Shown here in pieces: positions 7,310 to 35,482 of a stretch of DNA of 64,000 nt. The position numbers and the translations under genes were made by a program. The notes below the pieces were generated by a model, which did not search any database, was not told the DNA's origin, and was given only the letters and a program-made list of their open reading frames with translations. Every line of letters begins with the position of its first letter. The first letter of the stretch is position 1. Source of the DNA: Epithemia pelagica. Lineage: Eukaryota > Protista > Bacillariophyta. The stretch lies in contig OX337235.1 of NCBI GenBank assembly GCA_946965045.2, positions 3,100,001 to 3,164,000 on the forward strand, given 5' to 3'.

Positions 7310-7329
7310 TTTTATCCAAAGCATTCGAT

Positions 7330-8578: not shown

Positions 8579-8983
8579 ATATAGGAACGTAGGAGCGGGG
8601 GACCAGAATCGATCGAGAGATGAAACTGATGAAACCATTTACAATTGTTTTCGTTAAAGATTGTTGTACCTCTCAAGACGATCAGCAGTCTATGTACTTT
8701 TTATTATTCTCTTTGTTCTATTATAAACCCCACAGTATAGACGTAACTACTTCTAGGAGTAGTTACAAATTACCCCCTCGGCCGAGCGACCTAGCAGTCA
8801 TAGTCTTAATAGGTGTGACTAGGTATTATTTTTTGTGTCAAAATCAAAACCGTCAGTCGAACAGTTATTTCTATCAAAAGCTAACAACAACGACGACGAC
8901 GACGACAGTGCGGAGGACATCCCTTACGGTCGCGTTGGGATTAAACTCTTTACACCATACAACATCAGTCTGAGAATCAAAAA

Positions 8984-10846: not shown

Positions 10847-10866
10847 TTTTATCCAAAGCATTCGAT

Positions 10867-12115: not shown

Positions 12116-12186
12116 ATATAGGAACGTAGGAGCGGGGGACCAGAATCGATCGAGAGATGAAACTGATGAAACCATTTACAATTGTT

Positions 12187-12462
12187 CGCCATGCTTTCAA
12201 TGGTGCTGCACCAATTCAGACTGTACCTGTCGTTATTTGGACGGTTCACTGAAATTCTTTAGGATAGGAACGTAGGAAAGGGGGACTAGAACCAATCGCG
12301 AGACGAAACTGATGAAACCAATTACAGTTTTTGTCGTTAAAGAATGTTTTCCCTCGCAAGAAGATCAGCAGTCTATGTACTTTGTATTATTCTCTTTGTT
12401 CTATTATAAACCCCACATTATAGACGTAACTACTTCGAGTTTCAAATTACCCCGGCAGCCGA
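12187..12462 (+). repeat. Diverged copy of the LRR module-B C-terminus plus 3' flank
   Basis: CGCCATGCTTTCAATGGTGCTGCACCAATTCAG...AAATTACCCC is similar to about 4966-5240. Confidence 0.85.
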
Positions 12463-14826: not shown

Positions 14827-16177
14827 GGTTTAGAGACTGCTTTTTTTAAGTATTCGGTGACACACAAACGAACAAAAGGTTGCTGTCCACACTCGATATC
14901 TTGTGAGGGGAGGGAAAGATGGATGCAATGAATGCGCTACAGCAAAGCAAAGCAAAACCAAGGGCACTGAAAAAGAAACACCCAAGGCCACAGCAACAAC
15001 CACTCCAAATAACACACAATCACCTCATCCACAGCAGAGAGAGAGCGAGTGATTGCGTGGATCTCTCTCACAAACAAGCAGAACCACCAAGAGAGGTCAA
15101 TATGTCTCATGAAATCCCCGAAAACTCACTGGGACCAAAAAAAGTGAGAACTCCTTTTCGGCCAATATCCAAGACTCAATGCCCAACCAGTTCCCACGAA
15201 TTGTGGGCAATACGCCAAGGATTTCCGTTCAGGAATCTTCCGAATGTCGATGGCCGGTCACCGATACTTTCCCACCCAAAACTATGTGCATCTTTTTTAG
15301 CTTTCTCCTCATGGTAGTTCTTTGAATTTCATCGATGAGAGACTCCCCTGAGGATCTCTACTAGAGGTTTTTCCTACCTCTCTAGTGGTTGTTGTCGGGT
15401 GCAAGATTGAATCATAACGAGTTGCATTCCCCTCTTTTACACAACAAGGACATCGTTGACGACGACAGGAAACTCTGTGGGTGAAACAGAAGAACACCCG
15501 CAACAAACATGACAATGACACCCAACCCTGTCTTTGGATATTGTATCATACCGATAGGCTGTGGCGATTTTGGGGCAAACCTTTTTGATGGAATGTAGTT
15601 TTGTGTCATTTCTATGGATCGGGAGATGATTGTCCCTCTCTCTCTCTCTAGAGTTGCTAGTGCTCCGAAGTAGTTTACCCCCAAACAATGGTTCTCGCCA
15701 CAAATCTTCCGATTTATCTTGTTACGACAGTCCCCGTTGGTGATATTGTACAAACAATAGCGGGTCCATACCCATACCGTCAAAGTTTGGTCGGTTGCAG
15801 CTATACTCATTCTCATGGTGGTGCATCCCAGAGTCCAGAGTCTCGACTCTCGGGACATCTTCGAATAGGTAGATCGAAACAAGAACAGGGAACCAATGTT
15901 CCTGCAACCGCAACGCAGCTTCCGAGAAACGTCGGTTGAGAGTCATGGCCCGGCGCTCTCAATACATCTCATCGTTTGTCTGTACTATATTCTTTCGATG
16001 AATATATCATGATATACCCTCAAAGTGCTGGGGCGTTATACATTCGCGCGCGTCGGACGTTGGTCGTGCAGCTTTCTCCGTTGCACCAAACGACTCGCTC
16101 ACATTTTACCACAATCCCAAATTTTTGCCACAATCCCTTCGAAGGAGAGCGACAAACCTTGCTGATTGATTTTTACC

Positions 16178-17480
16178 ATGGCTGGAACTACAACAACGAA
16201 CCATCCGAGCAGCAAACGAATGATTTCAACGACGAGACTTGGTCGGTCCATGGGACTCGTGCTGATGGTGTGGTCCATACTATTCGTGTGTTTGGACCAA
16301 GTAGCAGCCGCAAAACGGAGGAATAGAAATGACCGCCGCCGATTGAGCAAAAACGATGACGACTACTACGATTATTATTATGATGACGACGACGACGACA
16401 AGGTACGTCTCATGGAACACACCATGGAGGAATACAGACGAGCGACACTCGTGGTAAAGCCATGACCACGAGAAGACATGTGGTTCTCTTTGTTTCCCCC
16501 GTTCTCTTTCGAAGGTAGCCCATTGGAGTTGTACGGATATGAGATTCACTCTCACAGGCCAGCCTATTTCTGTTTGTATGTCGCTTCGGACCCTATAGTG
16601 TGGCGAATGTACGGGTGCCATTGAACACTTGTATGTCGATTGCGTGGCTCCCAGTACAGTCACTTCCAACAAGGTTCGCGAATTGAACAATCCAGCCCTG
16701 TGTGCCATGGATTATTGGAAATGGATGGAATTTGTCCAACAACATTATTCCGATTGTCTCTTGGCTGGTGTCGCTTCTCCCTATGTTTTGCCCTTTTATG
16801 CCTCCTTGATCAATGATGCATCGGCCTACGCCCTGTTGGGTATCTTCAAGGCGGACGATGCCGCCTATGCCTGTCAAACTCAGCAATACAAGTGTCCCGA
16901 AGACTGGTACAATTTTCGACATGAACCCGTAGAGTCTACCTTGTGGCTGGATGGCCTCGTCGACGGTATCGATGACCAGGTGCCCAACCAGGTGGCCAAT
17001 GTCGCCTATGTTGGAGGCGATGGTGTCCTGTACGATGCCAGCATGTATCGAACTTTTGATCATGCCATTCTCGAATGTTGTCGGGGAACGCAGTGTTATC
17101 GTCCCTATTGGGGCATTCATGGCAATCCGGCCGACCAGAATGGCGACGACGACAAGACCAACACGGCCACTGGGACTTCCACGCCGGGGAATGCTGGAGC
17201 AGCAGCAGCGGCTGGAAGTGGTGGTGGTGGTGGTGGTGCCACTCCCGCCACGGTAGAAGGAGGAGGCGCAACAGTGGCCACGGCCAATGACAATGATCGA
17301 TCGGTCGGAACATCATCACAAAACGGACAAGAACAAGAGGGATTATCGACCACCATTTCGGCCGGTACCGCGGCTCAAACCAATGCTGCGACACGCAGCG
17401 GCAGCAGCAGTAGTTTGACAGTCCTGGCAATCACCATGCTCGTAGTATTGCTGACCACCACCAATCGGATGATATCATGA
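16178..17480 (+). CDS. Secreted, probably GPI-anchored Cys-containing protein (2 exons)
   Basis: Hydrophobic signal-like segment GLVLMVWSILFVCLDQVAAA. A phase-0 GT-AG intron 16403-16598 joins ...DDK to CGECTG... in frame. Gly/Ala/Thr linker and hydrophobic C-terminal tail LTVLAITMLVVLL. Confidence 0.7.
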
Positions 17481-18216
17481 TCGTGGAGTTGCTACGGGTC
17501 ACAGCATGACACGAAGAAGACGAAGTATGGACTGTATTTGTAGAGTACGCTAGTAATAATAATCATTCCAGCGCCATGAGTGTCGCGTCGTTTTGGTCTT
17601 TCTTATCGACACAACAGCCAGTCCCCAAACCGACGGATCACAACACACCAAATAGCAAACTTCTAGCTATCATCCGACCACTAAAGTCGAGGAGCGTCCC
17701 GAACTGGGGAGAACGAGGCCAAGGGCGAAACGAAACATTGTCAGTGGGATGGGTTGGTTTTTGTTGCTACTGCTGCCAACTCAAGGTCCAAGAATTGTAG
17801 GAGTAGAACGACACTGATGCCTCTGGCGAATCATATTCCTTGTGCTAGCTAGAGAGAAGGAGTAATAGCTAGTGTTGCTGTCGTATGTCCCGTGATAAAG
17901 GACAAAGGAGGTGGTACACTCATAGGTGTATCGCTTTTTTGGTAGCGGTCCATTTGGGGGGAATGTTGGATTGGTTGGGGAGAAGTCATTGTGGTCATTT
18001 TCCATTGAGGGGCAATTCTTTGTGTACAAGTCCCAAAGCATTGATCCCAACAAGCTTGTGAGATGGCAATTCTGTCGTCTCAAAATGGCATTTCCTCTCT
18101 CAAGTTCCAACCACTGCAGGCACGAAACAAGCGAGAGGGAGGAACAGCATCGATTGCCCGGACGAAACCAATCAATCAATCCATCCATTAATTAGTCCAT
18201 TACATAATCCATCATC

Positions 18217-20436
18217 ATGTCTCGAAGTGAACGCGATCGGTTTTTGGATGAAGACGAAGATGATGATGATGACTCGGAGGAGGAATCCTCGGACGATGAT
18301 GATGATGATGATGATGACTCGGACGACGACGATGAGGATGATTCCTCTGACGACGATGAGGATGATTCCTCTGACGATGACGATGATGATGATGACGACG
18401 AGGAGAGTAGTGACGACGATGATGATGATGACGACGACGATTATGCGGAACGAGCCCGACAAAGTCGACGAGGAGACGATTCCGATGAAGACGAGGATGA
18501 GGGGGAAGACTATGACGATGAGCACGAAACTTTAAATGATGAAAAACCACAGGGTGGTGCCAAGGGCAATGGTTGGTTTGGAGGCATGTTTGGATCCTTC
18601 AAAGCCGATGGAGATGACGACGATGACGAGGACGATCGTCGTCCCGAACAAGCGCGGCCTCGAGGCGATTCGGGTGGTTCCAACACCCAAAAGTACATGA
18701 TTGTGGGAGGAGTCATTGGTGTATTGGCAGTCGTGGGTGTCGTCTTGGGCATTGTCGTGTCGGGTGGCGGTGGTGGCGGTGGAAGTGACAAACAAGGGGC
18801 ACCGGCGGGACCGACTCCGGCACCCTCCGTTTCCGCGGCACCGTCCGTCTCCATGGCACCATCCATTTCGTTGGAACCAACGGTATCGCCCACGATATCT
18901 CCGGCACCATCGTGGGAGTCCCTGTTGGATGGGTCCGGTCAACCATCCATGCCCCCCGTGGAGGAGGTGACTCCCACCGTGTCACCGGTGGAAGCACACG
19001 ATGGGATTGATACCAGCACGGAATTGTTTGAGTTGATTGCTTTGAATTCTGCCGACAATGGGACGGCTGTCGTGTATCAACCCGATTCTCCCCAACAACG
19101 AGCCTTTTTGTGGTTGCAAAATGTCGATACCCTGACACGAAACAGTCTCCAACAACGGAGAGAACGACGATTGAACCCTGCGGCGGAATCCAAGCGGTTG
19201 CTCCGTGGTAGCAGTTTGCAAGAAAACGAGGATGATTCGGCTCGACGACTGACGGGTCCTATTAGTGACATTCAAATTGTGCAACGATATCGATTAATGG
19301 CCTTTTACTATGGCAGCAATGGTGATACGACCTGGACCAATTCCGCCTTTTTTGGCAGTCCCGACAAGCAGGAATGCAACTGGGACTTTAATCAAGATGA
19401 GGTCCAACTCAAGATTGATTGTATCTCACGCGTGTTTACCAATCCCGATACGGACGAGGAGGAAACGGTCCAAGTGGTGGTGCGGTTGATTCTCCAAGAC
19501 AATCATGTCACGGGTCAATTGGTTCCGGAACTGGGCGACATGACCACCTTGACGGAATTAATCATTGACAATTCCGATTCGGACGTTGGCATGACGGGTG
19601 GTATTCCAGAATCCTTTGGTCAATTGCATCGCATGACCAAGTTCAAGATTAGTGGCAACGACTTTAGTTCCCAGCCCTTGCCCTCCAACTTGTTGAACGA
19701 TTGGACCGATTTGGTCATTTTCAATGTGGGTCGGAATCGGTTGCCCGGTCTCATTCCCACATTGGGACCGCACTTGGAGACCATGACGCAATTCAATCTG
19801 GCCAACAATGACTTGACGGGTGCCATTCCACGGACCATTTCCTTTTTGAAAGGCCTCTCGTTGTTGACCCTGTCCAACAATGACTTGGAGGGAGACGTGC
19901 CACCGGAACTGTCGAGTCTGTCCCAACTTCGCAGCTTGACCTTGGACAACAACAAACTGACGGGTCCCTTTCCCGATGTGTCCACCATGGTTGAATTGAA
20001 GGCACAATTGGATCTTTCCAACAATTTGTTTTCCGGTCCCATTCCCAGTACGGCCTTGAACAATAACGTCAAGTTACAAGCCTTGTGGCTTCACAACAAC
20101 AACTTTGAAGGACCGTTACCGGACCTGTCCCCCTTGCTCAATTTGCGCAAATTGGATTTGTCGGGTAATCCATTCTTGACGGGAACCGTGTCGGAGCCCT
20201 TTTGTACCAATGAGGAGAAATTTGCCAGTGCCTATGGAAATGTCATGTGTGTTCCCGATCATGTCAATGACCAATGTGCGAGTGAACCAACGGCATTGGT
20301 TTGTTGTCCCTGCTGTGTCTGTGTCGAATCGGTACTACCCACTCCCACCCCAGCTCCCGTGGCCGTTTCGGTACCCACCGACACGGAGACACCCACAACA
20401 TCATCTTCCGCTCCTTCGGGTGATACGGGAGCGTAA
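18217..20436 (+). CDS. Type-II membrane LRR protein, module D
   Basis: Poly-Asp N-terminus, TM MIVGGVIGVLAVVGVVLGIVVSG, PSxxP stalk, LRRs, CCPCCVC cap; 739 aa, intact. Confidence 0.9.
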   Translation: MSRSERDRFLDEDEDDDDDSEEESSDDDDDDDDDSDDDDEDDSSDDDEDDSSDDDDDDDDDEESSDDDDDDDDDDYAERARQSRRGDDSDEDEDEGEDYDDEHETLNDEKPQGGAKGNGWFGGMFGSFKADGDDDDDEDDRRPEQARPRGDSGGSNTQKYMIVGGVIGVLAVVGVVLGIVVSGGGGGGGSDKQGAPAGPTPAPSVSAAPSVSMAPSISLEPTVSPTISPAPSWESLLDGSGQPSMPPVEEVTPTVSPVEAHDGIDTSTELFELIALNSADNGTAVVYQPDSPQQRAFLWLQNVDTLTRNSLQQRRERRLNPAAESKRLLRGSSLQENEDDSARRLTGPISDIQIVQRYRLMAFYYGSNGDTTWTNSAFFGSPDKQECNWDFNQDEVQLKIDCISRVFTNPDTDEEETVQVVVRLILQDNHVTGQLVPELGDMTTLTELIIDNSDSDVGMTGGIPESFGQLHRMTKFKISGNDFSSQPLPSNLLNDWTDLVIFNVGRNRLPGLIPTLGPHLETMTQFNLANNDLTGAIPRTISFLKGLSLLTLSNNDLEGDVPPELSSLSQLRSLTLDNNKLTGPFPDVSTMVELKAQLDLSNNLFSGPIPSTALNNNVKLQALWLHNNNFEGPLPDLSPLLNLRKLDLSGNPFLTGTVSEPFCTNEEKFASAYGNVMCVPDHVNDQCASEPTALVCCPCCVCVESVLPTPTPAPVAVSVPTDTETPTTSSSAPSGDTGA

Positions 20437-20730
20437 CATGTCGTGGTGGTGCGGCTGTTCTCAGTCCTTGACTCCCATCCGACCAAATCTGGGTGTTGTG
20501 GATCGTCCGGCTTGGTAGCAACAGACTGCTTGTAGTGTCTCGACCCACATTGCCTTTCTATTTCTCCAATGGGACCTTCACCGAATCGCAAGATTGCGTG
20601 TTGTTGGCAATCCAGTATCGTTGTACGATTATATATTCATTCATCCAATCTATTTTAGAGTCTCTCTTTCTCTTTACTTCTATGTTCATGGTGATGTAGT
20701 ATTTCTCGGATCCTTCTCCAATTGGGTTTG

Positions 20731-20960
20731 TCAATGGTGCTGCATCAATTCGACCTGGACCTGTCGTTATGGGGAAGGTTCACTGAAATGCTTGAGGATA
20801 GGAACGTAGAAAAGGGCGATCCAGAGACGAAACGGATGAAACCAATTACATTTGCTGTCTGTTGTCCCTCTCACGACGATCACCAGTCTGTGCACTCTTT
20901 GTTCTATATTAAACCGCCCGAACATTCTAGACGTAACGACTGGTGCAAATTACAATTGTC
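20731..20960 (+). repeat. Further diverged copy of the module-B C-terminus plus 3' flank
   Basis: Encodes QWCCINSTWTCRYGEGSLKC and is followed by the same 3' sequence as 4970-5240 and 12187-12462. Confidence 0.75.
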
Positions 20961-21366
20961 CCCAGAGAGTCGCTGGAAAATATGATTGGATCGTTACTTC
21001 CCGGAACAGTCGGGAAACTGTATTAGGAGTATAACACAAAAAAGAGGCTAGCTGCTCTCTCGGAGAGCCTAGAGAACCAGCGAACTTGCCATTGAGATTT
21101 TTGAGAGATGAAGCCGACTTTTTGGTCCTATATAGGGCGCAGTCATAGACATGGACCCAACAAGTTGGCGTACCAGTGCTGGGCTATAGCAAAAAGTTGA
21201 TCGCGAACACTAAACTCATCATTAATACTTTTTCACAAAAAATTGTTTCTGCCTTTTCCTCATCATCTCTCCGCAAATCAACTGCAAAAATGAAGCCTCG
21301 TGGCTTTGTTGCTCCTTTTTCCTTGGACAAACAGTCTAACTCATCTTTGCCGTTGATTCATAGAAG

Positions 21367-24300
21367 ATGAATCGTCTATTGATGCTTCTTCTCATTGCTG
21401 GCCTGGTGGCTGGCAGCATGGCCGAGTTCAACTTTTCTCGTGAGCTTGGAAAGAAAGACGACGGCGACTATTCTGGAAAGAAAGAAAAGAACAATGACTA
21501 CGACGATAAAAAGAAGAAACAGAATGCAAAGAAGTACGACGATGACTACGGCAAGAAGGGACAGAAGGAGAAGGGTGACGTGATGGTGGCCAACAATAAC
21601 TACGATGAAAAGAAACAGAATGCAAAGAAGTACGACGATGACTACGGCAAGAAAGGAAAGAAGGAGAAGGGCGGCGTGATGGTGGCCAAAATAGATACCG
21701 ACAACAACAAGGGTGGAGGTGGCATTTCCACCTTTCCAGTATCTTCCACAACGGATACACCAACAAATGCTAGGCCATCATCCATGCCGACCTTATCACC
21801 GGTGAACAATATACCGACCGTGACACCACTCCGTCCTGATTTTGTGGTCACTGCCGAATTCTTTGATTTGGTCGTGGCCTCCTCGACCGACAATGGTGCA
21901 GCTGTGCGGACCGTAGGATCACCGCAACAACAAGCCTATGTCTGGTTGGAATCCGATGTCCAAGCCGCCCGCAATCGACGCTTGCGACAACAAGAACAAG
22001 AACAAGAACACCGCTATCCTGGGCATACAAGCCCATCTCTTGCCACGCGTGACTTGTTGGCTGATTTGCATCCCTTTCGATACTTGCAACGGTACAGTCT
22101 CATGACGCTCTTTTATGCCACAAATGGACCTACGGAGTGGAACAATAAGGCAAGTCTTGGTGATACCGACGAATCGGAGTGTCTTTGGGATTTCAATAAT
22201 ATATTGGTGGATTGTGAGACCCAAACGTTTGATTGGGAAGAGACCAATCCGGATGGGACCACCAACGTTACCTCGATACAAGAAAAGGTGCTGATCAAAT
22301 TGGAAGTGGAAAACAATCGTGTCACGGGAAATTTGGTGGCCGAAGTGGCGCAATTGACGTCGTTGCGGATCTTGGTGATTGACAATACAGCCAATTCCGA
22401 CGCGGGATTGACGGGTGGTATTCCGGCCGAATGGAGTGCCTTGACCAACTTGGAACAGGTCAAAATTGTCGCCAATCAATTCACTGAACCGTTACCACCG
22501 GACTTGACGAGAAATTGGGACCGATTGCAACGATTGAACCTCGCCCGCAATCAATTGCCGGGACCCTTACCAACCTCCTTGACTGAAAGCAATCATCCTC
22601 AATTGCAACAAATCATTGTAACCGACAATCAATTGACGGGTGTCTTGACTGGCATTGCCACCATCACGACACTGACCCAACTGGTCTTGAACGACAATTT
22701 GTTTGAAGGGGAGTTGCCACCTGAATTGGGCAATTTGCAATCCCTCAGGAGTTTGAAATTGGGCGGGAATCGTTTTTCGGGGAATTTCCCCTCCTTTGTT
22801 TCAACGCTTACCGAGTTGAAAGCCGATTGTGACTTGAGTCGCAATCAATTTTCCGGAGTCATTCCCAATGATGCCTTTGCTGATTGACACAATTGCAACA
22901 ATTATTGTTACACGACAGTGGGTTTGGTGGACCTTTACCTACCAGTTTGAATAAATTGAACAAAATGCGTCGGTTAAACGTGGCCAGTCAACGGACGACG
23001 CCCGATCCACCGGGTCCTTTTCGAGGGGAGGTTCCCCCACCACTCTTTACCAGTGTGTCCGGACAGGCCAACAATGCCTATGTCTGGGTCTTTTGTGAGA
23101 ATCCCGACATAGATGATCCCAGTGATGACACAACTTGTGATCGGAGAGTATCGGTTTGTTGTTCCTGTTGTACCTGTGCCCACTGCCAACGGAACCCCAG
23201 CACTGTCCAGTGCTCCTTCAGAAGCACCGACATGAAGAGGGCTGTCCACTAGTGCTCCAACTCCCAGTATCCTTCCACAACTCATAGAAAGCGCGTGTGA
23301 TGGTCTGCCAGAGAATTGCGCCGCCGTGAGGCAGCCCGGTACGCCACAGAACCAAGCCATTTTGTGGCTTGCCAACAGTCAAGACGTGCAATTCATGACC
23401 GAAACCACTCAAATGGCTCGCTATGGCCTCGCCACATTGTATTATAGTACCAGCGGTGATGACTGGCTAAGGAACGACGACTGGCTCTCCGACCTTCCTC
23501 TTTGTAGATGGTACAGTACCTCTCAATTCACCAACATTTGCGACCCGATGGGGAACCTGCTCCATCTGGAGTTGGACAACAACAATCTGAACGGATCCCT
23601 GGTTCCCGAACTTGCCCTCTTGCCGACGATGCAAACACTTAGTATCAAGAGTTCGGGTACAGGACAATTAACAGGTCTCCTTCCACCAACTTTGGCTGCC
23701 TTGTCCCAGCTCACCAGTGTCACAAGAACGGGAAATTCATTCTCTGGAGGACTGCCGGATACATACGGAGACTGGGTGCAAGTGCAAACACTGGATTTGA
23801 GCAACAATAACCTTTCAGGTACCATTCCTTTGGGATTTGGACCGTTTCTCTCTGCGAATTCCATCGATTTATCCGACAACAACCTCTCGGGTCCCGTCCC
23901 TGCATCATTGGTCATTTCGGGAGTGTCGCCCAATGACAATCTATTCGACCTGAATTTGGATGACAATCGCTTCACCTTTATACCAAGTCAATTTGGTTTG
24001 CTGCGAAATATGATTAGTCTCCGCGCGAACCGAAATAATTTGCAAGTCTTCCCGACTGCCGTCTTCTCCATGACACAATTGCAAGTATTGCAACTCAGTG
24101 GCAACGGCATGGACGGACCCCTTGCCACTGGATTAGCGGCCAATGTGAACCTGAAAGATTTGTTCTTGTTGGACAACCGACTGACGGGTCCACTCATTCC
24201 AGAACTGTTTACCTTGGAAAATTTGGAACGGCTTAATTTGAGTTTCAATCGCTTGTCGGGTCCCATTCCGTCCAACATTGGAAATTTGGTCAATGTACGA

Positions 24301-27076
24301 GAATTGCATTTGGAAGGCAACTTGGGCATTAACGGGAGTGTTCCTGCAGCATTGGCCTCGTTAACACAAATCCGTGCCATTCACATTGAAAAGACTGGAT
24401 TGACCGGTTCCATTCCTGATCCAGTGTGTACCTTATACAATACCACAATGGCTAGACCACCAATCGCGTACGCTGATTGTGGCGATCATGATGACGGCGC
24501 ACCCTGTTTCCAATGGTGCTGTACCGATTCTACATTGGAGGATGATTGTACGTGTCGGTTCCCCACAGGCGACTCGAGATGCTTCTCATCTTTGGGGCCG
24601 ACGGGATATCCTCCCTTTGTGACTGAAGCCGGTCAAGCCTTGTACGATTTGATTGTCGAGAATTCCGCCGACAATGGTGCGGCTGTGGACATTCTCAATA
24701 CACCGCAACATCGAGCCTATTTGTGGAGCCAAAACATTGATGTACGGACCCAAAGTGTCAATGATGCTCGCAAATTACAACGCTTTCGTCTCATGGTCTT
24801 TTATTACGCCACCAACGGTCCCACCGATTGGACCGAACAAGGCTTTTGGGCCAGTCCACAACAAGACGAATGCAATTGGGAATTTGGCCAGGTCGGTGGG
24901 GAACTCTCGTGCAATGGAGCAGGAGAAGTGACAATCTTGGAATTGGTCAATGTCGGCATGACAGGAACCTTGGTGCCAGAATTGAGTGAAATGACATCCT
25001 TGCGAGAGTTGGTCTTGGACAATACCGGTAAACCAGATACAGGCTTGGTGGGTGGAATTCCCGATTCCTTGGGCAATTTGGAAAATTTGAACGTTGTGAA
25101 AATCGTGGGCAACTTTTTCGATACTCCCTTATCTGATTCCCTCTTTACCAAATGGACCCGACTCGTGACGTTGAATCTCAGTCGCAATCAGCTTCCGGGA
25201 TCCATTCCTTCCTCCGTGTCCTTCTTGACACAAGTTCGACAATTCCATTTGGGAGAAAATCAATTGACGGGACCCTTACCCTCCCAAGTTCAGTTTATGA
25301 CGCGTGCCACCCTCTTTATTGTCGCCAACAATCAATTGCGATCCAGTGTCCCCAGTCTCTTGGCCCTTACCGAACTTCTAACACTCCGATTGGACAATAA
25401 CAACTTTTCGGGTAGTTTTCCCGCCATTTCCACCCTGACCCAACTACAAGCCAATTTGGACTTGTCCAACAATGGCTTTTCCGGTGGGATTCCCAATTCC
25501 ATTGGCAATCATGTCAATTTGCGAAGTTTGAATTTGAAAAATAGCGGTTTCGACGGACCCTTGCCCACAGGATTTGATAAATTGTCCAAATTGCGCAATT
25601 TGGACTTGTCGGGAAATCCCGGCTTGACGGGGACCGTACCCGGTGGTGTGTGTGACAATTTGGAGTTTGCCACAGCAACTGGTTCCGGATCGGCTATTGT
25701 GGATTGTGGAGTCGAGGATACCTGCTCACCTGCCCAAAATGTGTGTTGTTCGTGTTGCGAATGTGCAACATATGGGATTGATACTACTACCAAATTGTTT
25801 GAGTTGATTGCCATGAATTCTGGAGACAATGGGACGGCCGTTGTGTATCAACCCGATTCTCCCCAACAACGAGCCTTTTTGTGGTTGCAAAATGTCGATA
25901 CCCTGACACGAAACAGTCTCCAACAACGGAGAGAACGACGACTGAACCAAAGTCCCAAGGACCGTAGTCGTCGTCGTGGGAATCCTGTGGCGGAATCCAA
26001 TCGATTGCTCCGTAGTAGTAGTTTCCAAGACGACAACGGCGAGGATTCTGTTCGACGACTGACGGGTCCTATTACGGACATTCAAATTGTGCAACGATAT
26101 CGATTAATGGCCTTTTTCTATGCCAGCAATGGTGATACGACCTGGACCAATTCCGCCTTTTTTGGCAGTCCCGACAAGCAGGAATGTGACTGGGACTTTA
26201 ATCAAGATGAGGTCCAACTCAAGATTGATTGTTTACCACGCGTGTTTACCAATCCTGATACGGATGAGGATGAAACGGTCCAAGTGGTGGTGCGGTTGAT
26301 TCTCCAAGACAATCATGTCACGGGTCAATTGGTTCCGGAATTGGGCGATATGACCACCTTGACGGAATTAATCATTGACAATTCCGATTCGGACGTTGGC
26401 ATGACGGGTGGTATTCCAGAATCCTTTGGTCAATTGCATCGCATGACCAAGTTTTTCCCAACCCTTACCCTCCAACTTGTTGAACAATTGGACCGATTTG
26501 GTCATTTTCAATGTGGGTCGGAATCGGCTGCCCGGTCTCATTCCCACATTGGGACCGCACTTGGAGACCATGACGCAATTCAATCTGGCCAACAATGCCT
26601 TGACGGGTGCCATTCCACCGACCATTTCCTTTTTGAAAGGCCTCTCGTTGTTGACCCTGTCCAACAATGACTTGGAGGGAGACGTGCCGCCAGAATTGTC
26701 GAGTCTGTCCCAACTTCGCAGCTTGACCTTGGACAATAACAAACTGACGGGTCCCTTTCCCGATGTGTCGACCATGGTCGAACTAAAGGCACAATTGGAT
26801 CTTTCCAACAATTTGTTTTCCGGTCCCATTCCCAGTACGGCCTTGAACAATAACGTCAAGCTACCGGACCTGTCGCCCTTACTCAATTTGCGCACGTTGG
26901 ATTTGTCGGGTAATCCACTCTTGACCGGAACAGTGTCCGAACCATTTTGTACCAATGTGGAGAAATTTGCCAGTGCCTATGGAAATGTCATGTGTGTTCC
27001 CGGTCATGTCAATGACCAATGTCCAAGTGAACCAACGGCCTTGGTCTGTTGTGCTTGCTGTGCCTGTGTCGTATAG
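21367..27076 (+). pseudogene. Giant four-module (A-B-C-D) secreted LRR gene, disrupted
   Basis: Signal peptide MNRLLMLLLIAGLVAGSMA. Relative to its paralogs: -1 at about 22885, -2 at about 23178 (frame restored), in-frame TGA 23233-23235, a net 23-nt deletion at about 26455, and an in-frame 42-nt deletion near 26860. The modules match the 28271, 12691 and 18217 genes. Confidence 0.8.
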
Positions 27077-28270
27077 GTACCACCCGCCACTACTCCAGCG
27101 CCAGTGGCCAGTTCGGTACCCACGACATCACCCGCCGCTCCTTCGGGCGATGTGGGAGCGTAACAGGTCGTGGTGGTGCGGTTGCTCTAAGTGCTTTTTC
27201 CATCCTACCACATGTCGGGGTTGTGGAACGTCCGGCTTGGCATGAACAGAGTATTGTCTCCCGACCCATTGCCTACCTACTCCGAGGGGACCTTCACCGA
27301 ATCGCAAGATTGCGTGTTGGCAATCCAGTATCTTTGTACGATTATTTCATAATCATTCATCCAATCTATTATAGAATCTCTCTCTTTCTCTTGTATACAC
27401 TGCAAGCAATGACAAGCCTTCCACCTCTAGAGGGACAAACAGCATTCTTTACACCGATAGACATTTGATGCGTTATGCTTGTTGTGTCATGGTATAATAC
27501 GTGATTGAAAATGAGGCCGGTAGCTCAGTCCTGTGGGACGGACGATAGACAGACGAAATGCCACACCATGCCCGGCGCCCAGCCGACTTTTTTACGGTCC
27601 ACGCGCAGTCACAGACATGGACCCAACGCGTTGGCGCAGCAGGGGGGCTCTCTATTATTAGAGATTGCGTTGCGCAAAATGGACCGCGAACACCAAACTT
27701 GCAAAATTGTCTCCCCCATCTTTTTCCCTCCCAAAATCAGTGTTCTGTTGTTGCTAATAGCTTTGTGTTGTTTGAAGAGCGTGGTTCTGTATCCTCAACC
27801 TACTACTACACCATTATTTCTCTCATCTGTGAGAGTAAACGACTTTTGGTACAACAACACCGCTTTGCTTGTTCTTGTTGGACAATCGCACAGCATTGCA
27901 AAACTCAAAGCAACGGCGGATTGGGTCGTCCTTCGTTCTGTACTTCATTATTCTCCCTTCTTTTGGTGTTTGACAAGGACGCGACAGTCGTCCGTTTGAT
28001 CTGACAAAGAAAAAACGCCAACACTACAGCCAACACCACGGACCCTATATACGTCACTACCCTCCAAGACTACAGAAAGCGCCAATCGTAGTGGGAGGAA
28101 AACTTGAACCGAAACATCGAATCTTTCTAGTCTTGGATCAGGAGCTTGCATTCGAAGGACTCTGAACAAGATACCCACACAGTGTCACCAGAAAGAGAGT
28201 GACACACCTCTAATATACCAGCAGTATCAGGAGCAGCAACCACCACAACCACCACCATAACAACACAAAA

Positions 28271-30628
28271 ATGGGCAAAGATCCCTTTCAAGACGAGCAC
28301 GAGTCTTCGTCGGAAGATGATGACGATGATGAGAGCAGTAGTGGGGAAGACGACAGCAGTAGTGGAGAGGACGATGATGATTCATCCTCGGAAGGTTCCA
28401 GTTCGTCGGGGGAAGACGACGATGACGACGATGGTAGCGGCTCCGAGTACGAAGACGACGATGACGACGACAACGAGGATGACGACAAGCGAAAACCACC
28501 CACCACACCGGATCAAGACCGAAGCGATACAGCGAAACGAGACAAGCGTCCTGGATCCGGACGGTTTTCCGGTGCCGCCATGGGGTTGTTTGGCAAGCGT
28601 CAAAAAGAACATCAAGACGACGACGACGACGAAAATGACAAGAAGAGTCGCGATGCCTTTCATGATGAAGGGGATGATGATGATGACGATGAGGATGACT
28701 CGCGTCGTCGTGGAAACTGGGATGACGACGACGATGATGATCCCGAAGTTCCCGAAAAGGCACGTGATGATACCAAGAACAAGCGTGGATCCGTCACCAA
28801 GGAGTCGGCCGATTATGCACGAGGCAAATGGATTGTCTTGGCCGTGGCTGCAATCTTGCTCGTGATTGGTATTGTTGTGGTGGTGGCCGTGGTGGTGGCC
28901 ATGAAAGATAGTGACGACAAGGAAAAGGAAAGTTCCCCGTCACCGTCCGTTTCGGCGGCACCCTCACTGTCGGCCGTCCCTACCATTTCTCCGGCACCCT
29001 CGGTATCCTTACAACCGTCGGGTATACCGACCTTGTCCAATGCTCCCAGTATTTCGGCGGAACCCTCCTTGTCGGATCATCCCTCTGCTTCCCCCACCAT
29101 GTCATCGGCACCGACATCAGAGGGTGGTGGCATTCCCACCTTTCCAGCTCCTCCCACCACCCCGGCACCGACCATTTCGGCAGCGCCGACGCAATCGCCC
29201 GTGACCAATACACCGACTGCGACACCGGTCCGTCCTGATTTTGTCGTGACGGCCGAATTGTTTGATTTGGTCGTGGCCACCTCCGCCGACAATGGTGCAG
29301 CTGTTCGGACCATAGGATCGCCGCAACAACAAGCCTATGTCTGGTTGGAATCGGACGTCCAAGCCGCCCGCAATCGACGCTTGCGACAACAAGAACAAGA
29401 ACAACACGAACGTGAACAAGAACACCGTACTACGGGGCACACCAACCCGTCGCTTGCCACGCGTGACTTGTTGGCTGATTTGCATCCCTTTCGACGCTTA
29501 CAACGGTACAGTCTCATGACGCTCTTTTATGCCACAAATGGACCTACGGAGTGGAACAATAAGGCAAGTTTTGGTGATACCGACGAATCGGAGTGTCTTT
29601 GGGGTTTCAATAATATTTTGGTGGATTGTGAGACGCAAACGTTTGATTGGGAAGAGACCAATCCGGATGGGACCACCAACGTTACCTCGATACAAGAAGA
29701 GGTGCTGATCAAATTGGAATTGGCCAACAATCGTGTCACGGGAAATTTGGTGGCAGAAGTGGCCCAATTGACGTCGTTGAAGATCTTGGTGATTGACAAT
29801 ACAGCCAATTCCGACGCGGGATTGACGGGTGGCATTCCCGCTGAATGGAGTGCCTTGATCAATTTGGAACAGGTCAAAATTATTGCCAATCAATTCACCG
29901 AACCGTTACCTGCCGACTTGACAAGAAATTGGTCCCAATTGCAACGATTGAACTTGGCCCGCAATCAATTGCCGGGACCCTTACCAACCTCCTTGACTGG
30001 AAGCAATCATCCTCAATTGCAACAAATCATTGTAATCGGCAATCAATTGACGGGTGTCTTGACTGGCATTGCCACCATCACGACCTTGACCCAACTGGTC
30101 TTGAACGACAATTTGTTTGAAGGCGAGTTGCCACCCGAATTAGGCGATTTGCAATCGCTCAAGAGCTTGCGATTGGGTGGGAATCGTTTTTCGGGGAATT
30201 TCCCCTCCTTTGTTTCGACGCTCACCGAGTTGAAAGCCGAATGTGACTTGAGTCGCAATCTATTTTCCGGAGTCATTCCCAATGATGCCTTTGCTGATTT
30301 GACAAACTTGCAACAATTATTCTTACAGGACAGTGGGTTTGGTGGACCTTTACCTACCAGTTTGGATCAATTGACCAAAATGCGTCGCTTAAACGTGGCC
30401 AGTCAACGGACGACGCCCGATCCACCGGGTCCCTTTCGAGGGGACGTTCCCCCACCACTCTGTACCAGTGTGTCCGAAACGGCCAACAATGCCTATGTTT
30501 ATGTCTTTTGTGAGAATCCCGATGACGATCCCGCTGATGACACAACTTGCGATCGGACAGTATCGGTTTGTTGTGCGTGTTGTACCTGTTTGCCCCCTCC
30601 CGACAATCCCGATATTGGTCCCACCTAA
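28271..30628 (+). CDS. Type-II membrane LRR protein, module A
   Basis: Acidic N-terminus, TM WIVLAVAAILLVIGIVVVVAVVVAM, stalk, LRRs, CCACCTC cap; 785 aa, intact. Confidence 0.9.
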   Translation: MGKDPFQDEHESSSEDDDDDESSSGEDDSSSGEDDDDSSSEGSSSSGEDDDDDDGSGSEYEDDDDDDNEDDDKRKPPTTPDQDRSDTAKRDKRPGSGRFSGAAMGLFGKRQKEHQDDDDDENDKKSRDAFHDEGDDDDDDEDDSRRRGNWDDDDDDDPEVPEKARDDTKNKRGSVTKESADYARGKWIVLAVAAILLVIGIVVVVAVVVAMKDSDDKEKESSPSPSVSAAPSLSAVPTISPAPSVSLQPSGIPTLSNAPSISAEPSLSDHPSASPTMSSAPTSEGGGIPTFPAPPTTPAPTISAAPTQSPVTNTPTATPVRPDFVVTAELFDLVVATSADNGAAVRTIGSPQQQAYVWLESDVQAARNRRLRQQEQEQHEREQEHRTTGHTNPSLATRDLLADLHPFRRLQRYSLMTLFYATNGPTEWNNKASFGDTDESECLWGFNNILVDCETQTFDWEETNPDGTTNVTSIQEEVLIKLELANNRVTGNLVAEVAQLTSLKILVIDNTANSDAGLTGGIPAEWSALINLEQVKIIANQFTEPLPADLTRNWSQLQRLNLARNQLPGPLPTSLTGSNHPQLQQIIVIGNQLTGVLTGIATITTLTQLVLNDNLFEGELPPELGDLQSLKSLRLGGNRFSGNFPSFVSTLTELKAECDLSRNLFSGVIPNDAFADLTNLQQLFLQDSGFGGPLPTSLDQLTKMRRLNVASQRTTPDPPGPFRGDVPPPLCTSVSETANNAYVYVFCENPDDDPADDTTCDRTVSVCCACCTCLPPPDNPDIGPT

Positions 30629-31418: not shown

Positions 31419-34400
31419 TCACTCTGGGGATCCATGATCATCAGTAATATCCCAAAGGACCAGACTCAACAAATGATTGCGTTTCTGTCCTCCTGGAATC
31501 ACCTTGGTGGCCAAATCGGCTGGATTATGCTGCGTGGGAATATGTGTAGTCAACAATTCACCCATGGCAACGGCTTCTCTGACAGCATGATAGCAAATAG
31601 AATTGGACTTCTTCTTCAGCGATGATTCCGGCTTCGATGTATTATGAATCACGGACATGTTATCACCATAAACATATGTAGGACCAGACAACGGCACTCC
31701 CATCATCCGTAATTTGTAGCGTAGTCCCCTGACGGCCTCCATGCCCGTCTTCATTGCGACAAACTCAGCTCCAAAAACGGATGTTTCGATGGTCGCTTGT
31801 CGCTTGGTATACCACATAATAGGTGCCATATTCATAAAGATGAAGAATCCAGTTCTAGATCGCCGTACCATCTTGTCACCAGCATGATCCGAGTCAACAT
31901 ACAGCCGCAGATCCACTTCTTTACCACGTGCCTTTGGTGCATTCGGTGGAACTGCCTCCTTTACATCGCCGTAGAACTCCTTCCAGTCGCAATCTTCACG
32001 AAATTCTCGGAGGTCTATCTCGGGATAGGTCGGATCAAATGCCATCCTGGCATTGTGCTTGATTTTCAAATAGGAATACATATGGAACACTGCTTCCAAA
32101 TGTCCTTGTCGTGGACTTGCCACTTGGGATGCTAACAATGATGTTTCGGTCATGATATCCACCCTTCCCAGTTCAACCATCCATCTGAGGACGCCAATCT
32201 GGGACTGGTAGAACGACACCTCGTCTTCATTCAGTTGATCTGTCACGTCCAGAACTGGGTCATATTCTGATGGGAACGGAGTCGCCGCGCGTCTTGCGAG
32301 CTTGCGGCCGCCACACTCGCGTTCCAAATACGTCTCAACATTCGAAACAGCTTCTTGTACATACTTGCTCGAATTTATAGCCCAACTGACAACGGAATTG
32401 GGCATGGTCATGGGCTTAAGCTTCCCTCCAAGGTACATGTCAGGATTTCCGATCGAGCCCGGCTTCATAGGGAAGAAATGATCTAACTCGTGTAACATCG
32501 CAGTCGCATCGTGCGATATGGCCAAGACATCGTCTACGTACAGCAATACATAGGCGTTGTACTTGTGACCGTCACTCGGACGTGTCATAGGCTTCATCCA
32601 CAAGTCTCGATCAGCACCCAAGCACGGATCGTACCCAAGAGTTCTCATACAACTCGCAAGGTGGTTGCGGAAACTTGCACCGGCACTCTTTAACCCATAC
32701 AATGCTCGTACAATATATGCACGCTTCCCAGCGTTGGACCCGAACTCGGGGCCCAGTACAGTCCAGATTTTCTCACTGTTCGGCGCAGTTAAATAAGCAT
32801 TCTTGATGTCGGACGTTTTGACCTCTAGGTCGTTGAGAGCGGCAATAGTGAGGGCAATACGAACACTTTCTCGAGATACAACACTGGCATAAGTCAATGT
32901 TGCTGGTGCCTCTGTTGTGTGTCCGCCCGCTACAAACCGTGCCTTTCTCCTGAAATCTTCCATTTTTACGTCGAAAACCATGTGGCATCGGATCTCCTGG
33001 AAGCCAGGAGCTGGTTTCTCGTCGTCTTCCATCAACTTGAACGCCACTCGAACAGCTTCCATCTCTTTCTCGATGGCCTTTCGCCACAAGTCGTTGCCAT
33101 TCCTTCTGTCAAGTTTGTATGCTTCGGCAACAGTCTTGGGGATTTCGATCCCAAACTTGTGCGTCCGCTTGTGGTAGCGGCTGTTGACGGCGGCGAGTAT
33201 CCGATCTCGTCGTCGGAGGAATTTACTCACCCACCAATCAAACGCTGGCTCGTTTTCAATCTGCTTTGCGATGGCGTACTCCGCCACTTCAATCGGATTT
33301 GATTCCTTCAGTCCGGCCAGGCGCTCCCAGGACGTTGATCCGTCGCGCCACTGGACGCACAACTCCCACCCTTTCGTCGTCTTCTTGCTGTGCTTCCGTC
33401 CTCGGACAACAACGTAGCGGTTATCGTGGTCGACAGCGGCTTTGGTCTTGCGATGGTCAACAATGCTGTCCAACAGCAAGAATTGGTTTCCCTCGGCATC
33501 GCACTGCGCATACATATTTTCCGCGATGACATTCGCGGCATACTCAGACGTCTCGCCGTCTGGAAACTCAACAACATAAACTCTCGAGTCTAGAATCGGG
33601 TTGTGGGACGACGTCCCCTTGAGACGGCCATCGCTGGTCTTGGACCGTCTTTTCACCTTGCCCGTCACCATTGCATCACCCTTCGGCAACAAGACGTCGG
33701 CTCCAACGTAGTTATCGTAGGTGTCTGGTGTGATGTCGTCAATGTCGGGTGCAATCGGTGGCTTGGGGTCATCATCGTCTTCATACGCCTCGTAGGTCGG
33801 CGTTTCCACATCAACTAGACCATCGTAGTCTTCGACTTTAGCTACACTGCCTAACTTCTCGTTGACCTTGCTCGTGTAGTCTTTTCTCTTCTCTATTTCA
33901 GTCGGGTCACGGATTTCATCGTCCGTCAGATGTCGGTAGGTCGAGCGAATCTTGATCATTCCTGACTCGGCTAGGATCTTAATTGCATGTGCGGGTCCCA
34001 TGTCCGTCGCAGGACCTAGGTACCTACCCAGTTTCTCCTTGTCTTCCGGGTAGTTGGCCGCTGAGTCGTAGTAATAAACCCAGTCGTACCACCCATATCC
34101 AGCCAAGAGTGAAATGTCGAAGGTCTCCCCGTACATTGCCGTTTCCGGGACTTGACCTGACAGCTCGAAATTACTATGACATGTAGCCGATCTGATATAG
34201 GCTTCCAACTCGAGGCAATGATCCCACAATACCTTGGGAGATTTAGTTGAGACCAATTTCCGTCCAGTACCACGCTTCAACTCCCTAATTGCACTCTCAG
34301 CCGCATTTGCCCATGGAGTATAGGGCTCCAACTGTTTCACTCGACAACCAGCCTCTCTAGACTTCTTCCTGAACTTGCCCTTGACCTGTTCCGCGGCACC

Positions 34401-35482
34401 ATCCATGATTAGTTCCGGTGGACGGCCTTCCCTCTGGAGCAACAACGACAAAGCTTCGTGTGCATCGCCTTTCGAGGCCAGAGGGTACGCTCTAGTCCAT
34501 CCATTCCTTGCCGTGAAGACTTGGGCACAAGTATTACCCAGCCTAGACTTCACCTTCGAAAACATAGTGTCCGTGAATAAGGGATGAGGCAATGGCCGGT
34601 ATCGGTGAAACCGGTCGTTCGTCGTGAACCTCTTGGTCAGGGGGTTCAATGTGGTACGTAGACCACGTTGCGTCGTCACTCGAAGGGTATCCGCTGCACG
34701 TTCCAATCCACATCCCCATCGACGTGCCAAAGTCTTGGCATCGATAGCTTTTCCAGAAGGGGTAGTTTGTGTTACGGAAAGAGTCGCCACGCGTGCTTGC
34801 AGAGCAGTCGCGAAGCATGCGGTTTCCGACGGTCGCGAATCAGAAAGCAAAGTCGTGAAAGGGTCATTGGGTCCCCTTGAGCGAACGGTGGAAATCGATC
34901 GTTGGAGGGCCGCTCGGGCCGACATTTCATCCCGAGCGAAAGAGTCATCTTGGGGTCCCACGGCGGGTCGGGACTAGTCAAATCAAAGCGACGACATGAA
35001 GCATATTCCTCGGAAGTGGGGGTCCTCGTAGGGAAATAGGAAGTGACACCACATAAATCAAGGGGTATCACAAATTCCTCATCGTCCTGATCTTTCAGGA
35101 CCAGTGCGTGTGTCTTATTGTCGGGATTATCGGTCAAGAATTTCGGTTGGTCCGAAACTTGCACGTCATTCATCCACAACTGCATAGGGCACAGGAGGTT
35201 GTGAGTAAGCGATGGTATATAAATGGCCTGGTTCACGAGTAGGATCAATACTTCACCGGTATCGGGGCAATCGTAAGCTAGAGCCGCACTTATAGTCTTG
35301 CAACTCTTGTGAACCACGCCCTGAGAAGAATCATATCCCTTGACATCCACAGGGCGGCCATAGTCCTGTACAACCATCGCAGACCTTCCAACAACACACG
35401 TGTCCGCATGACTATCAAGCTCGGTACGAGACTTGCCCTCGTCGGACGTGTCAACCGCACCGACACGCACTGAGCGGACCAC
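31419..35482 (-). CDS. pol: Copia pol (protease, integrase, chromo-like segment, RT, RNase H) with one 1-bp frameshift
   Basis: Protease ELDSHADTCVVG; integrase FTDTMF...IMDGAAE...AESAIRELK; RT LLYVDDVL; RNase H LYVDSDHAGD. The two ORFs join if the G4 run at 34952-34955 were G5. Confidence 0.93.

Follow-up and report, generated by a model that had tools for sequence, protein, structure and literature searches.

How did a single reading path in a diatom gene cluster come to hold four complete LRR ectodomains, when a near-copy of each is found in a different stand-alone gene nearby? Within the window, by which we mean the whole 64,000-nucleotide stretch analyzed, sequence alignment resolves positions 21367-27076 of the plus strand into a signal-peptide-like head followed by four complete LRR ectodomain modules, A-B-C-D. 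We judge that this locus is probably a chimeric fusion gene, formerly functional and now a young pseudogene, within a cluster of type II LRR receptor-like genes of a diatom. The original prediction, a signal peptide and four modules in one path, is borne out: the modules are whole ectodomains of four neighboring genes, each extending from the linker up to the stop codon or just short of it, and the transmembrane (TM) helix is absent. The parts of the chimera are as follows.

21322-21366, plus strand: 5' leader, copied along with the head; homology to two genes of contig C18 starts about 45 bp before the ATG.
21367-21696, plus strand: head, with a signal-peptide-like N-terminus (MNRLLMLLLIAGLVAGSMA/EF) and then a Lys/Asp-rich spacer.
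21697-23178, plus strand: module A (linker, N-cap, LRRs, and the Cys-rich C-cap CCSCCTC), paralogue of the 28271 gene's ectodomain.
23179-23246, plus strand: A-B joint, a piece of S/P/T linker of the L012 type (L012 being a second B-type gene).
23247-24588, plus strand: module B, a B-type ectodomain, 96-97% to C8:3078723-3081440 (L002, 905 aa).
24589-25772, plus strand: module C, copy of the inverted 12691 gene's ectodomain.
25773-27076, plus strand: coding part of module D, copy of the 18217 gene's ectodomain.
27077-27392, plus strand: the D donor's S/P/T tail, original stop, and about 235 bp of 3' flank, from alignment.

Because the next-best paralogues of the modules have less than 50% amino acid identity, the pairing of each module with its donor is unambiguous. 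In a self-BLAST of the window, module A (21697-23190) matches 29110-30604 of the 28271 gene at 89% (90.8% over aligned columns) and ends 24 nt short of that gene's stop. Module C (24600-25772) matches the inverted segment 13864-12692 at 95.0% (94.97%) with no indels, and spans the 12691 gene from its last linker codons to the first two bases of its stop codon. Module D (25772-27392) matches 19001-20674 of the 18217 gene at 84.8% with gaps counted and 92% over aligned columns, with a 36-bp in-frame insertion at 25948 and a 42-bp in-frame deletion at 26859. Module B, for which no donor had been proposed, is 96% identical in an own-genome search to G000:C8:3080077-3081427, the C-terminal ectodomain of a 905-aa gene lying 20 kb upstream of the window. 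The chimera comprises five or six segments, the nearest relative of each being a different gene, and all four ectodomain donors still lie within 50 kb of it. Three of them are in the window.

12691-14826, minus strand: stand-alone gene related to module C; it encodes a type II LRR membrane protein of 711 aa whose TM helix spans residues 215-253.
18217-20436, plus strand: stand-alone gene related to module D; its product of 739 aa has a TM helix spanning residues 159-187.
28271-30628, plus strand: stand-alone gene related to module A; its product of 785 aa has a TM helix spanning residues 183-215.

The stand-alone relatives share a type II layout, in which an acidic N-terminus precedes one TM helix and an S/P/T linker leads on to the LRR domain; the donors are intronless. 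A single TM helix upstream of the LRR domain is present in all five stand-alone genes and in proteins P0168, P0032, and P0109. P0168 comes from another organism (49% identity) and shares the single-module layout with Atlas diatom clusters of 578-891 aa; an Atlas feature search gave 0.90-0.96 to seven LRR clusters, the commonest phylum being Bacillariophyta. LRR_1, LRR_4, LRR_8, and LRR_14 exceed the Pfam cut-offs in every piece of the chimera and in every donor. Each of the four modules, which are 28-46% identical to one another, has an N-cap motif and a CCxCCxC or CFQWCC C-cap, and a hydropathy scan found no TM helix in the chimera. The chimera holds domains of the diatom type II LRR family but lacks the family architecture: four separately capped LRR domains stand in one chain, as in a Slit-like layout, and four lesions interrupt that chain here. 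Judged by eye, its N-terminus resembles a signal peptide, and the product was presumably TM-less and secreted.

A fifth segment, the head, was borrowed as well: it matches the 5' ends of two non-LRR genes of contig C18 at 81-84% identity (own-genome matches at C18:537061-537301, 81%, and C18:550195-550348, 84%). These paralogues run on into a non-LRR ORF with no Pfam match. The signal peptide of the original prediction is thus itself copied from the C18 genes. Within the spacer is an internal tandem duplication (21490-21598 and 21592-21693, 87%).

The joints coincide with domain boundaries and show 0-3 bp of microhomology. At the C-D joint, the chimera reads GCA ACA TA/T GGG ATT GAT (slash at the joint) versus GCA ACG TAA in donor C, so the joint lies inside the donor's stop codon, as had been claimed, with possibly 1 bp of microhomology. 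The B-C joint is in frame and drops the last 3 codons and the stop of donor B. Both joints had been described as in frame and as omitting the donors' tails and TM helices. The frame is indeed kept, but the donors' TM helices are N-terminal, as befits type II proteins, not C-terminal, and module D, contrary to that description, keeps the 18217 gene's tail plus 235 bp of 3' flank. The A-B joint of the window haplotype is 1 nt out of frame (23177-23246), with a TGA at 23233-23235, and its linker piece is 84% identical in the own-genome search to C8:3084301-3084373. A scan of JGI metagenome contigs with the C-D-joint peptide found no match.

The reading path begins with the ATG at 21367 in frame 1; the gene, being broken, was read in pieces or else with X marking the breaks. 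Besides the A-B frameshift and its TGA, the window haplotype has a 1-bp deletion at 22883 in module A and a 23-bp frame-breaking deletion at 26454 in module D. Its total is four frame-breaking lesions, the number first counted, plus an early TAG (27074-27076) 38 codons ahead of donor D's stop. A single open frame of 1114 codons (23326-26670) nevertheless extends through B and C and 230 codons into D; a public protein word search with its 1114-aa product returned mostly bacterial and plant LRR proteins, the only close kin being P0001, from the other haplotype. Introns were considered as a cause of the frame breaks and rejected, since the breaks are 1-, 2-, and 23-bp differences from the donors and are in part haplotype specific.

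That other haplotype, L013 (ENA ERZ21939226 ctg1315l), belongs to an independent assembly and is 1.5-5% diverged. Its modules stand in the same order, its B-C and C-D joints are identical to those of the window haplotype, and its allele is also broken. It matches the window at 98.5% identity with 0 gaps over 2775 bp. Its A-B joint is a different one of 40 nt that is in frame, and P0001 reads through it. The 1-bp deletion, the A-B frameshift, and the TGA are private to the window haplotype, whereas L013 alone carries +2 at 21931, -5 at 22933, a 375-bp element, and an 8.3-kb copia element. As the only shared frame-breaking lesion is the 23-bp deletion, the decay is recent. Read-derived unitigs cross the C-D joint (X2 record 14, X4 record 32) and the A-B joint of the window haplotype (X1 record 2, X3 record 19), and the end of the L013 insertion is also present in X3; among the pieces listed, no unitig bridges the B-C joint. 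Logan contig depth is uninformative because short unitigs mix paralogues.

Substitution patterns suggest that the fusion was under constraint. Chimera-donor dN/dS is 0.29 for A, 0.20 for B, 0.19 for C, and 0.20 for D (upper confidence limits at most 0.45), as estimated by the Nei-Gojobori method, which ignores transition bias and tends to understate omega; the portion of D downstream of the 23-bp deletion gives 0.13. The corresponding dS values are 0.175 for A, 0.109 for B, and 0.140 for C. At family-conserved sites, the chimera has 8 derived residues and the donors 6, and each module breaks 0-2 of the 89 invariant columns. The low dN/dS and the even split of derived changes together indicate constraint for most of the fusion's life, and the four-domain secreted-type gene seems, on these sequence comparisons, to have worked for long and to have decayed only recently. 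The low dN/dS could in part reflect gene conversion from functional neighbors rather than selection on the chimera itself; no long identical tracts between modules and donors were seen.

Gene conversion also underlies the strongest alternative, which we consider unlikely but worth real weight: that the multi-module gene is far older than its 85-96% identities, ectopic conversion in either direction having homogenized the modules with their neighbors, so that the near-copy identities date the last exchange and not the joins. Synonymous divergence is indeed uneven. In C, it is 0.097 in the 5' part and 0.305 in the 3' part, with nonoverlapping confidence intervals, and in A, it is 0.58 in the linker versus 0.175 in the folded part, although linker alignments are unreliable. 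Module cores are 96-97% identical to the donors and module edges 88-89%, and B is a mosaic of an L012-type linker followed by an L002-type body. The uneven divergence and the mosaic B imply later sequence exchange, so that the age of the joins cannot simply be read from the high identities. Against an older gene, homology stops exactly at the module boundaries, and D includes its donor's noncoding 3' flank at a divergence similar to dS, both of which fit segment copying; moreover, no identical tract longer than about 150 bp was seen. Greater age would in any case alter the dating and not the origin by concatenation.

A further point for an older gene comes from a relic upstream.

7908-8578, plus strand: relic within a tandem amplicon of 3537 bp; the copies at 4371-5041 and 11445-12115 are identical to it.

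Three parts make up the relic: a K-rich head piece of 35 bp, 198 bp of A's 5' end (80-83%), and an L012-type 3' end, namely, the last 440 bp of an L012-type gene including the stop (94.7%). It shares the head-A joint with the chimera, yet at only 80-83% identity. It had been taken for an A-B form that stopped after B; the 5' end of A is there, but the B part derives from a different, L012-type gene, and the joint between them is out of frame. The relic lends no more than loose support to a head-A-B2 precursor. A separate suggestion, that the amplicon's 620-aa ORF is a CRN effector, was rejected, as the ORF has no Pfam match and the organism is a diatom, not an oomycete.

We think it very unlikely that the locus is rearrangement debris, dead on arrival, which never was a working gene and owes its in-frame joints to luck. 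It is broken in both haplotypes, and tandem amplification and transposon activity mark the surrounding region. However, the upper limits on the dN/dS of 0.19-0.29 stay under the value of roughly 0.55 that one neutral lineage would be expected to give, and the derived changes are symmetric. Between the haplotypes, the 2775 bp of B-C-D hold no indels, versus four in 1.5 kb of A. Furthermore, the three joints are all at domain boundaries and in frame, A-B being so in L013.

Less probable still is an ancestral four-module gene that gave rise to its single-module neighbors by fission, for which the shared sequence speaks and nothing further. Each neighbor possesses a long acidic N-terminus, a TM helix, and a linker of its own, all absent from the chimera, and module D carries its donor's 3' flank. 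Fission is unparsimonious given that the stand-alone type II architecture is the conserved one, occurring also in P0168 and the diatom Atlas clusters. Finally, paralogues 85-96% identical within 50 kb are the classic setting for collapse or mis-joining, but an assembly artefact is scarcely credible here, as the same joints recur in the second assembly of a diverged haplotype, read-derived unitigs bridge C-D and A-B, and the modules differ from their donors at 4-11% of sites throughout, which marks them as separate copies.

We return to the fusion of copied segments. At least five separate genes would have contributed such segments, which would have been joined, probably in succession, through events that were non-homologous or at the level of microhomology: the 5' leader and signal peptide of a secreted-protein gene on another contig and the ectodomains of four cluster members. 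A usable protein would require that the frame be kept, that the upstream module's stop be gone, and that the cytoplasmic and TM part of the next module be omitted, and this filter would make every joint run from just past a C-cap to within a linker. The product would be a TM-less protein with four independently capped LRR domains in series, presumably secreted. Purifying selection probably maintained it through most of its history, and some sequence exchange with the stand-alone relatives took place later. Function would then have been lost through the 23-bp deletion in D first, followed by haplotype-specific frameshifts, the nonsense codon, and transposon insertions. The original prediction of cassette-like shuffling is apt only as a description, and a dedicated mechanism need not be invoked, since the few in-frame, TM-free survivors could account for the precise joints. 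Three boundary-precise joints are nonetheless many for unguided events.

An RNA-mediated chimeric retrogene was also considered, since the head homology begins near the likely transcription start and that of D enters the 3' untranslated region. It was rejected: the D homology runs out in CT-rich sequence that lacks a poly(A) tract, nothing else favors a retrogene, and the intron test is void because the donors are intronless.

Among known proteins, a similar layout is that of animal Slit, a secreted protein whose four LRR domains (D1-D4) follow one another in tandem and bear individual Cys-rich N- and C-caps. The chimera resembles it in having a putative signal peptide and four separately capped LRR domains with short linkers, each a potential independent binding surface. 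In contrast to Slit, with which it is akin only through the LRR repeats, the chimera has no EGF or LamG domains, its caps are of diatom type (N-cap LFDLI..NSADNGAAV..PQ..A..WL, C-cap CCxCCxC), and it is recent, traceable to neighboring genes, and now broken. Plant clusters of LRR receptor-like proteins (Cf-9/Hcr9 and Cf-2) form chimeras via unequal crossing-over and sequence exchange. They too are tandem clusters of intronless LRR receptor genes with exchange among paralogues and frequent chimeras and pseudogenes. However, plant exchange is homologous and keeps a single ectodomain, whereas here whole ectodomains of dissimilar paralogues stand in series, the joins are non-homologous, and a putative signal peptide of foreign origin takes the place of the membrane anchor. 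In lampreys, VLR assembly, in which LRR cassettes are inserted by somatic copy choice guided by short homologies, likewise stitches nearby donor cassettes into one reading frame. The VLR process is somatic and builds a single LRR domain from subdomain cassettes, while the chimera is germline, involved very few events and whole domains, and shows no sign of an enzyme-driven process.

Serial LRR modules also occur in P0229, an environmental protein (JGI metagenome 3300082498, contig Ga0671645_0005945). It is one intact intronless ORF with at least five complete modules (N-cap, LRRs, and C-cap) of 370-402 aa that are 37-46% mutually identical, each beginning within about 20 residues of the preceding C-cap; P0223 and P0050 each have several C-caps. 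The multi-module architecture is thus not unique to the chimera, although P0229 belongs to another LRR subfamily (about 30% to module C, C-cap CxCCTCC). One could imagine that diatoms or related protists recurrently string clustered LRR ectodomains into secreted multivalent proteins with boundary precision, but we find this highly improbable. If true, it would be a germline counterpart of cassette assembly, with this locus caught in the act and P0229-type proteins as older products. Our search of the own genome found no other multi-module LRR gene and hence no sign of a recurrent process here: full-length module matches of two subfamilies are all in single-module frames, and eleven large LRR-matching ORFs have at most one N-cap and no C-cap motif.

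The locus is a well-documented case of ordinary processes, namely, duplication, fusion, selection, and decay, and not a new mechanism. It provides an unusually clear record of the intronless building of a multi-domain binding protein, with joints readable to the base and a substitution pattern suggesting that the product was in use before it was lost. Diatom LRR receptor-like genes form a large, fast-evolving family, for which the conversion of membrane-anchored single-domain proteins into a TM-less multi-domain one is documented here. If the secreted form was functional, whether as a decoy, an adhesin, or a ligand cross-linker, it would offer a handle on the receptors' ligands.

The LRR fusion pseudogene at 21367-27076 on the plus strand, hereafter the chimera, consists of a head followed by four LRR modules, A to D. 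Its relatives are five stand-alone LRR genes in or just upstream of the window, which spans C8:3100001-3164000:

12691-14826, minus strand, relative of module C
18217-20436, relative of module D
28271-30628, relative of module A
C8:3078723-3081440, just upstream, 905 aa, relative of module B (L002)
C8:3083174-3085675, just upstream, 833 aa, a second B-type gene, B2 (L012)

The LRR genes of the cluster are intronless, and the stand-alone genes share a common plan. The N-terminal half comprises a long acidic N-terminus, a single strongly hydrophobic helix, and a Ser/Pro/Thr linker; the C-terminal half comprises an N-cap (…LFDLI..NSADNGAAV..PQ..A..WL…), LRRs matching Pfam LRR_1/4/8/14, a Cys-rich C-cap (CCxCCxC, or CFQWCC…CTC in the B type), and a short tail. 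This shared layout identifies them as type II membrane proteins with a C-terminal LRR domain. In a different organism, the 661-aa protein P0168 has this layout too, with 49% identity across the full module, indicating that the single-module anchored form is the conserved one. Bacillariophyta is the commonest phylum in the nearest LRR clusters of the window LRR proteins (Atlas scores of 0.90-0.96), which points to a diatom rather than an oomycete. Diatom LRR receptor-like genes form an expanded, fast-evolving family, some members of which are regulated during sexual reproduction (PMC5485032). The surroundings in the window include a copia element (RVT_2; 31419-34961) and a DDE transposase. A fifth A/C/D subfamily member (C8:3317000-3323000) has a 1052-codon open frame with a very long Ser/Gln-rich N-terminus, at a locus that includes a run of N.

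Self-BLAST, together with a search of all 60.5 Mb (23 contigs) of the genome, confirmed the original prediction that the chimera concatenates LRR ectodomains of its neighbors, including its assignment of modules A, C, and D to the 28271, inverted 12691, and 18217 genes:

Modules of the chimera compared with their stand-alone relatives (dS intervals overlap; dN/dS with bootstrap intervals)
Module A, 21697-23190 versus 29110-30604, 89% identity; dS 0.175; dN/dS 0.29 (0.18-0.45)
Module B, 23247-24597 versus C8:3080077-3081427, 96% identity; dS 0.109; dN/dS 0.20 (0.11-0.34)
Module C, 24600-25772 versus 13864-12692 (inverted), 95.0% identity, no indels; dS 0.140; dN/dS 0.19 (0.10-0.32)
Module D, 25772-27392 versus 19001-20674, 84.8% identity with gaps, 92% over aligned columns; dS 0.164; dN/dS 0.20 (0.12-0.29)

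These pairings are unambiguous, since the next-best paralog of every module falls below 50% amino acid identity. The first 260 bp (21327-21584) comprise a leader of ~45 bp, an N-terminus resembling a signal peptide, and a spacer rich in Lys and Asp, and match the 5′ ends of two contig C18 genes at 81 to 84% identity; those genes run on into a non-LRR open reading frame (ORF) with no Pfam match. The Lys/Asp-rich head spacer (21490-21693) carries a tandem duplication of ~102 to 109 bp (87% identity) that the C18 paralogs lack. The 68-bp A-B spacer (23179-23246) is 84% identical to the L012 linker and unlike that of L002. Counting the head and this linker, the chimera combines six or more segments, each with its own origin.

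All upstream breaks lie between C-cap and stop, and all downstream breaks lie in the linker past the transmembrane (TM) helix. Module A ends directly after its CCSCCTC motif, 24 nt short of the donor stop. Module B stops three codons before the donor stop, in frame with the last linker codons of donor C (…SSLG|PTGYPPFV…). The C-D join had been placed on the donor stop codon, and C indeed breaks off after two bases of the donor TAA, where it meets the end of the donor D linker (…ECAT-Y-GIDT…), with just 1 bp assignable to either side. A hydropathy scan found one helix in each stand-alone gene; in the chimera, with X placed at its breaks, it found none. The B-C and C-D joins are in frame and free of donor TM helices as proposed; module D, however, retains the donor tail, the original stop, and ~235 bp of 3′ flank. 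Homology there runs out in a CT-rich sequence that lacks poly(A).

A word search recovered a 1,028-aa protein (P0001, 98% identical) encoded by the other haplotype (L013), on the 507-kb contig ctg1315l of a different assembly (ENA ERZ21939226). This locus is collinear with 12998-27361 at 95 to 98.9% identity, in the unchanged order head, A, B, C, D, and matches 23246-26020 at 98.5% with zero gaps across the B-C and C-D joints. Four public runs belonging to a single study supplied bridging unitigs: X2 record 14 and, free of differences, X4 record 32 cross the C-D joint, and X1 record 2 and X3 record 19 cross the A-B joint of the window haplotype. No listed unitig bridges B-C, which is supported by the two assemblies. 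A loose X3 end at 26020 coincides with the start of an L013 insertion, indicating that the study's material contained both haplotypes. We therefore reject misassembly of the junctions. The second haplotype preserves the module order and is not an intact allele, as both copies carry lesions:

Window haplotype, 22883, 1-bp deletion
Window haplotype, A-B joint, 1 nt out of frame (anchor distance 71 nt versus 40 nt in L013)
Window haplotype, 23233-23235, TGA
Window haplotype, 26454, 23-bp deletion
Window haplotype, 27074-27076, TAG, costing only 38 codons of tail
L013, 21931, +2
L013, 22933, -5
L013, two element insertions

The first four correspond to the frame-breaking lesions initially counted. 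L013 lacks the first three; judged against the donors, the 22883 deletion is derived in the window haplotype only, and at A-B, L013 has a different piece of L012-type linker, in frame, through which P0001 reads. The 23-bp deletion alone is common to both haplotypes, so their common ancestor probably had a frame open from the ATG into D. Both L013 insertions lie in module D: at window 26020, a 375-bp element (L013:13068-13442) that has a relative of 82% identity in L010, and at window 27029-27033, a copia element of 8.3 kb (L013:14456-22754) with a 1,893-aa RVT_2 ORF, TG...CA ends, and a 5-bp target duplication (GAACC).

We estimated dN/dS by the Nei-Gojobori method, which ignores transition bias, for each module against its stand-alone relative. 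The value expected of a chimera neutral from the start, with donors at the allelic omega of 0.08 to 0.22, is ~0.55. In D, the portion 3′ of the common 23-bp deletion gives 0.13, indicating that most of its divergence predates that deletion. Counted at sites on which the rest of the family agrees, 8 residues are derived in the chimera and 6 in the donors, and each module breaks 0 to 2 of the 89 columns invariant across the four stand-alone A/C/D/E-type genes. Between haplotypes, omega is higher (0.26 to 0.50), with four indels in A and none over 2,775 bp of B-C-D. Together, these sequence comparisons point to a long constrained phase followed by recent loss. Conversion from functional neighbors could mimic the constraint signal, although no identical tracts longer than ~150 bp occur between modules and donors.

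Allelic dS is 0.02 to 0.10. In module C, synonymous divergence is 0.097 over the first 900 bp and 0.305 in the 3′ part, the last 270 bp (25500-25772 versus 12692-12964), reflecting either a conversion tract over the 5′ part or exchange of one copy's 3′ end with another sequence. Divergence in B and D is higher toward the edges than in the core, and B is a mosaic of L012-type linker and L002-type body. This unevenness and the B mosaic indicate some exchange between modules and stand-alone genes after the first joins, so identities give no simple date for the joins.

A relic (7908-8578, plus two identical copies) joins 35 bp of K-rich head, its 5′ end cut off, to 198 bp from the 5′ end of A, which share 80 to 83% identity with the chimera and 78% with donor A, through the head-A joint also present in the chimera; the final 440 bp of an L012-type gene follow, including stop and flank (94.7%). 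This fits an old head-A-B2 precursor whose middle was later lost; the suggested A-B form ending after B is not seen intact, the A/B2 joint being out of frame. The relic lies in a 3,537-bp unit present as three tandem copies of 100% identity (1769-12186), each also encoding a 620-aa ORF without a Pfam match and a 192-aa ORF. An additional inverted partial copy (L010, C8:3233450-3233647) is 97.8% identical over 449 bp. The unit represents either a very young amplification or a mobile unit. Stretches at 20731-20896 (74%) and 12178-12383 (86%), one of them just upstream of the chimera head, match the L012-type gene end and 3′ flank kept in the relic (8493-8700) and may be traces of older tandem head-A-B2 units.

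The segments and joints can be read directly, and from them the joining would have proceeded by serial copying within the 50-kb cluster, with one segment inverted and one from another contig, through joins with little or no homology. Retention would have been limited to products that kept the frame, removed stops, and lacked a TM helix. An RNA-mediated route was dropped for want of any hallmark, including poly(A) at the D end. The proposed cassette-like shuffling describes the segments and joints, with no indication of a dedicated joining system: all full-length module matches of two LRR subfamilies in the genome are single-module, and no more than one N-cap occurs in any of 11 large ORFs with LRR matches.

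An exhaustive search of representative proteins identified P0229, which likewise carries several complete LRR modules in one chain: at least five of 370 to 402 aa (37 to 46% mutual identity), each ending CxCCTCC, and one partial. Its intact intronless ORF of at least 2,009 aa, whose N-terminus runs off the contig (L025:1-6030), comes from JGI metagenome 3300082498 (contig Ga0671645_0005945). Two further proteins, P0223 and P0050, also have several C-caps. Another small LRR cluster of the E. pelagica genome (C17:228378-234797) contains three single-module genes of the P0229 type (~40% identity) within 6.5 kb on both strands. Animal Slit is a secreted protein with multiple LRR domains, a layout that the chimera resembles. 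Given P0229 and Slit, the architecture is not new. Chimeric genes are well known in plant LRR receptor clusters, where homologous exchange keeps a single ectodomain, whereas the chimera places ectodomains in series. The original observation is confirmed and its overall interpretation supported with these corrections: the chimera offers a clear and datable case in which domains accumulated through gene fusion and pseudogenization followed recently.
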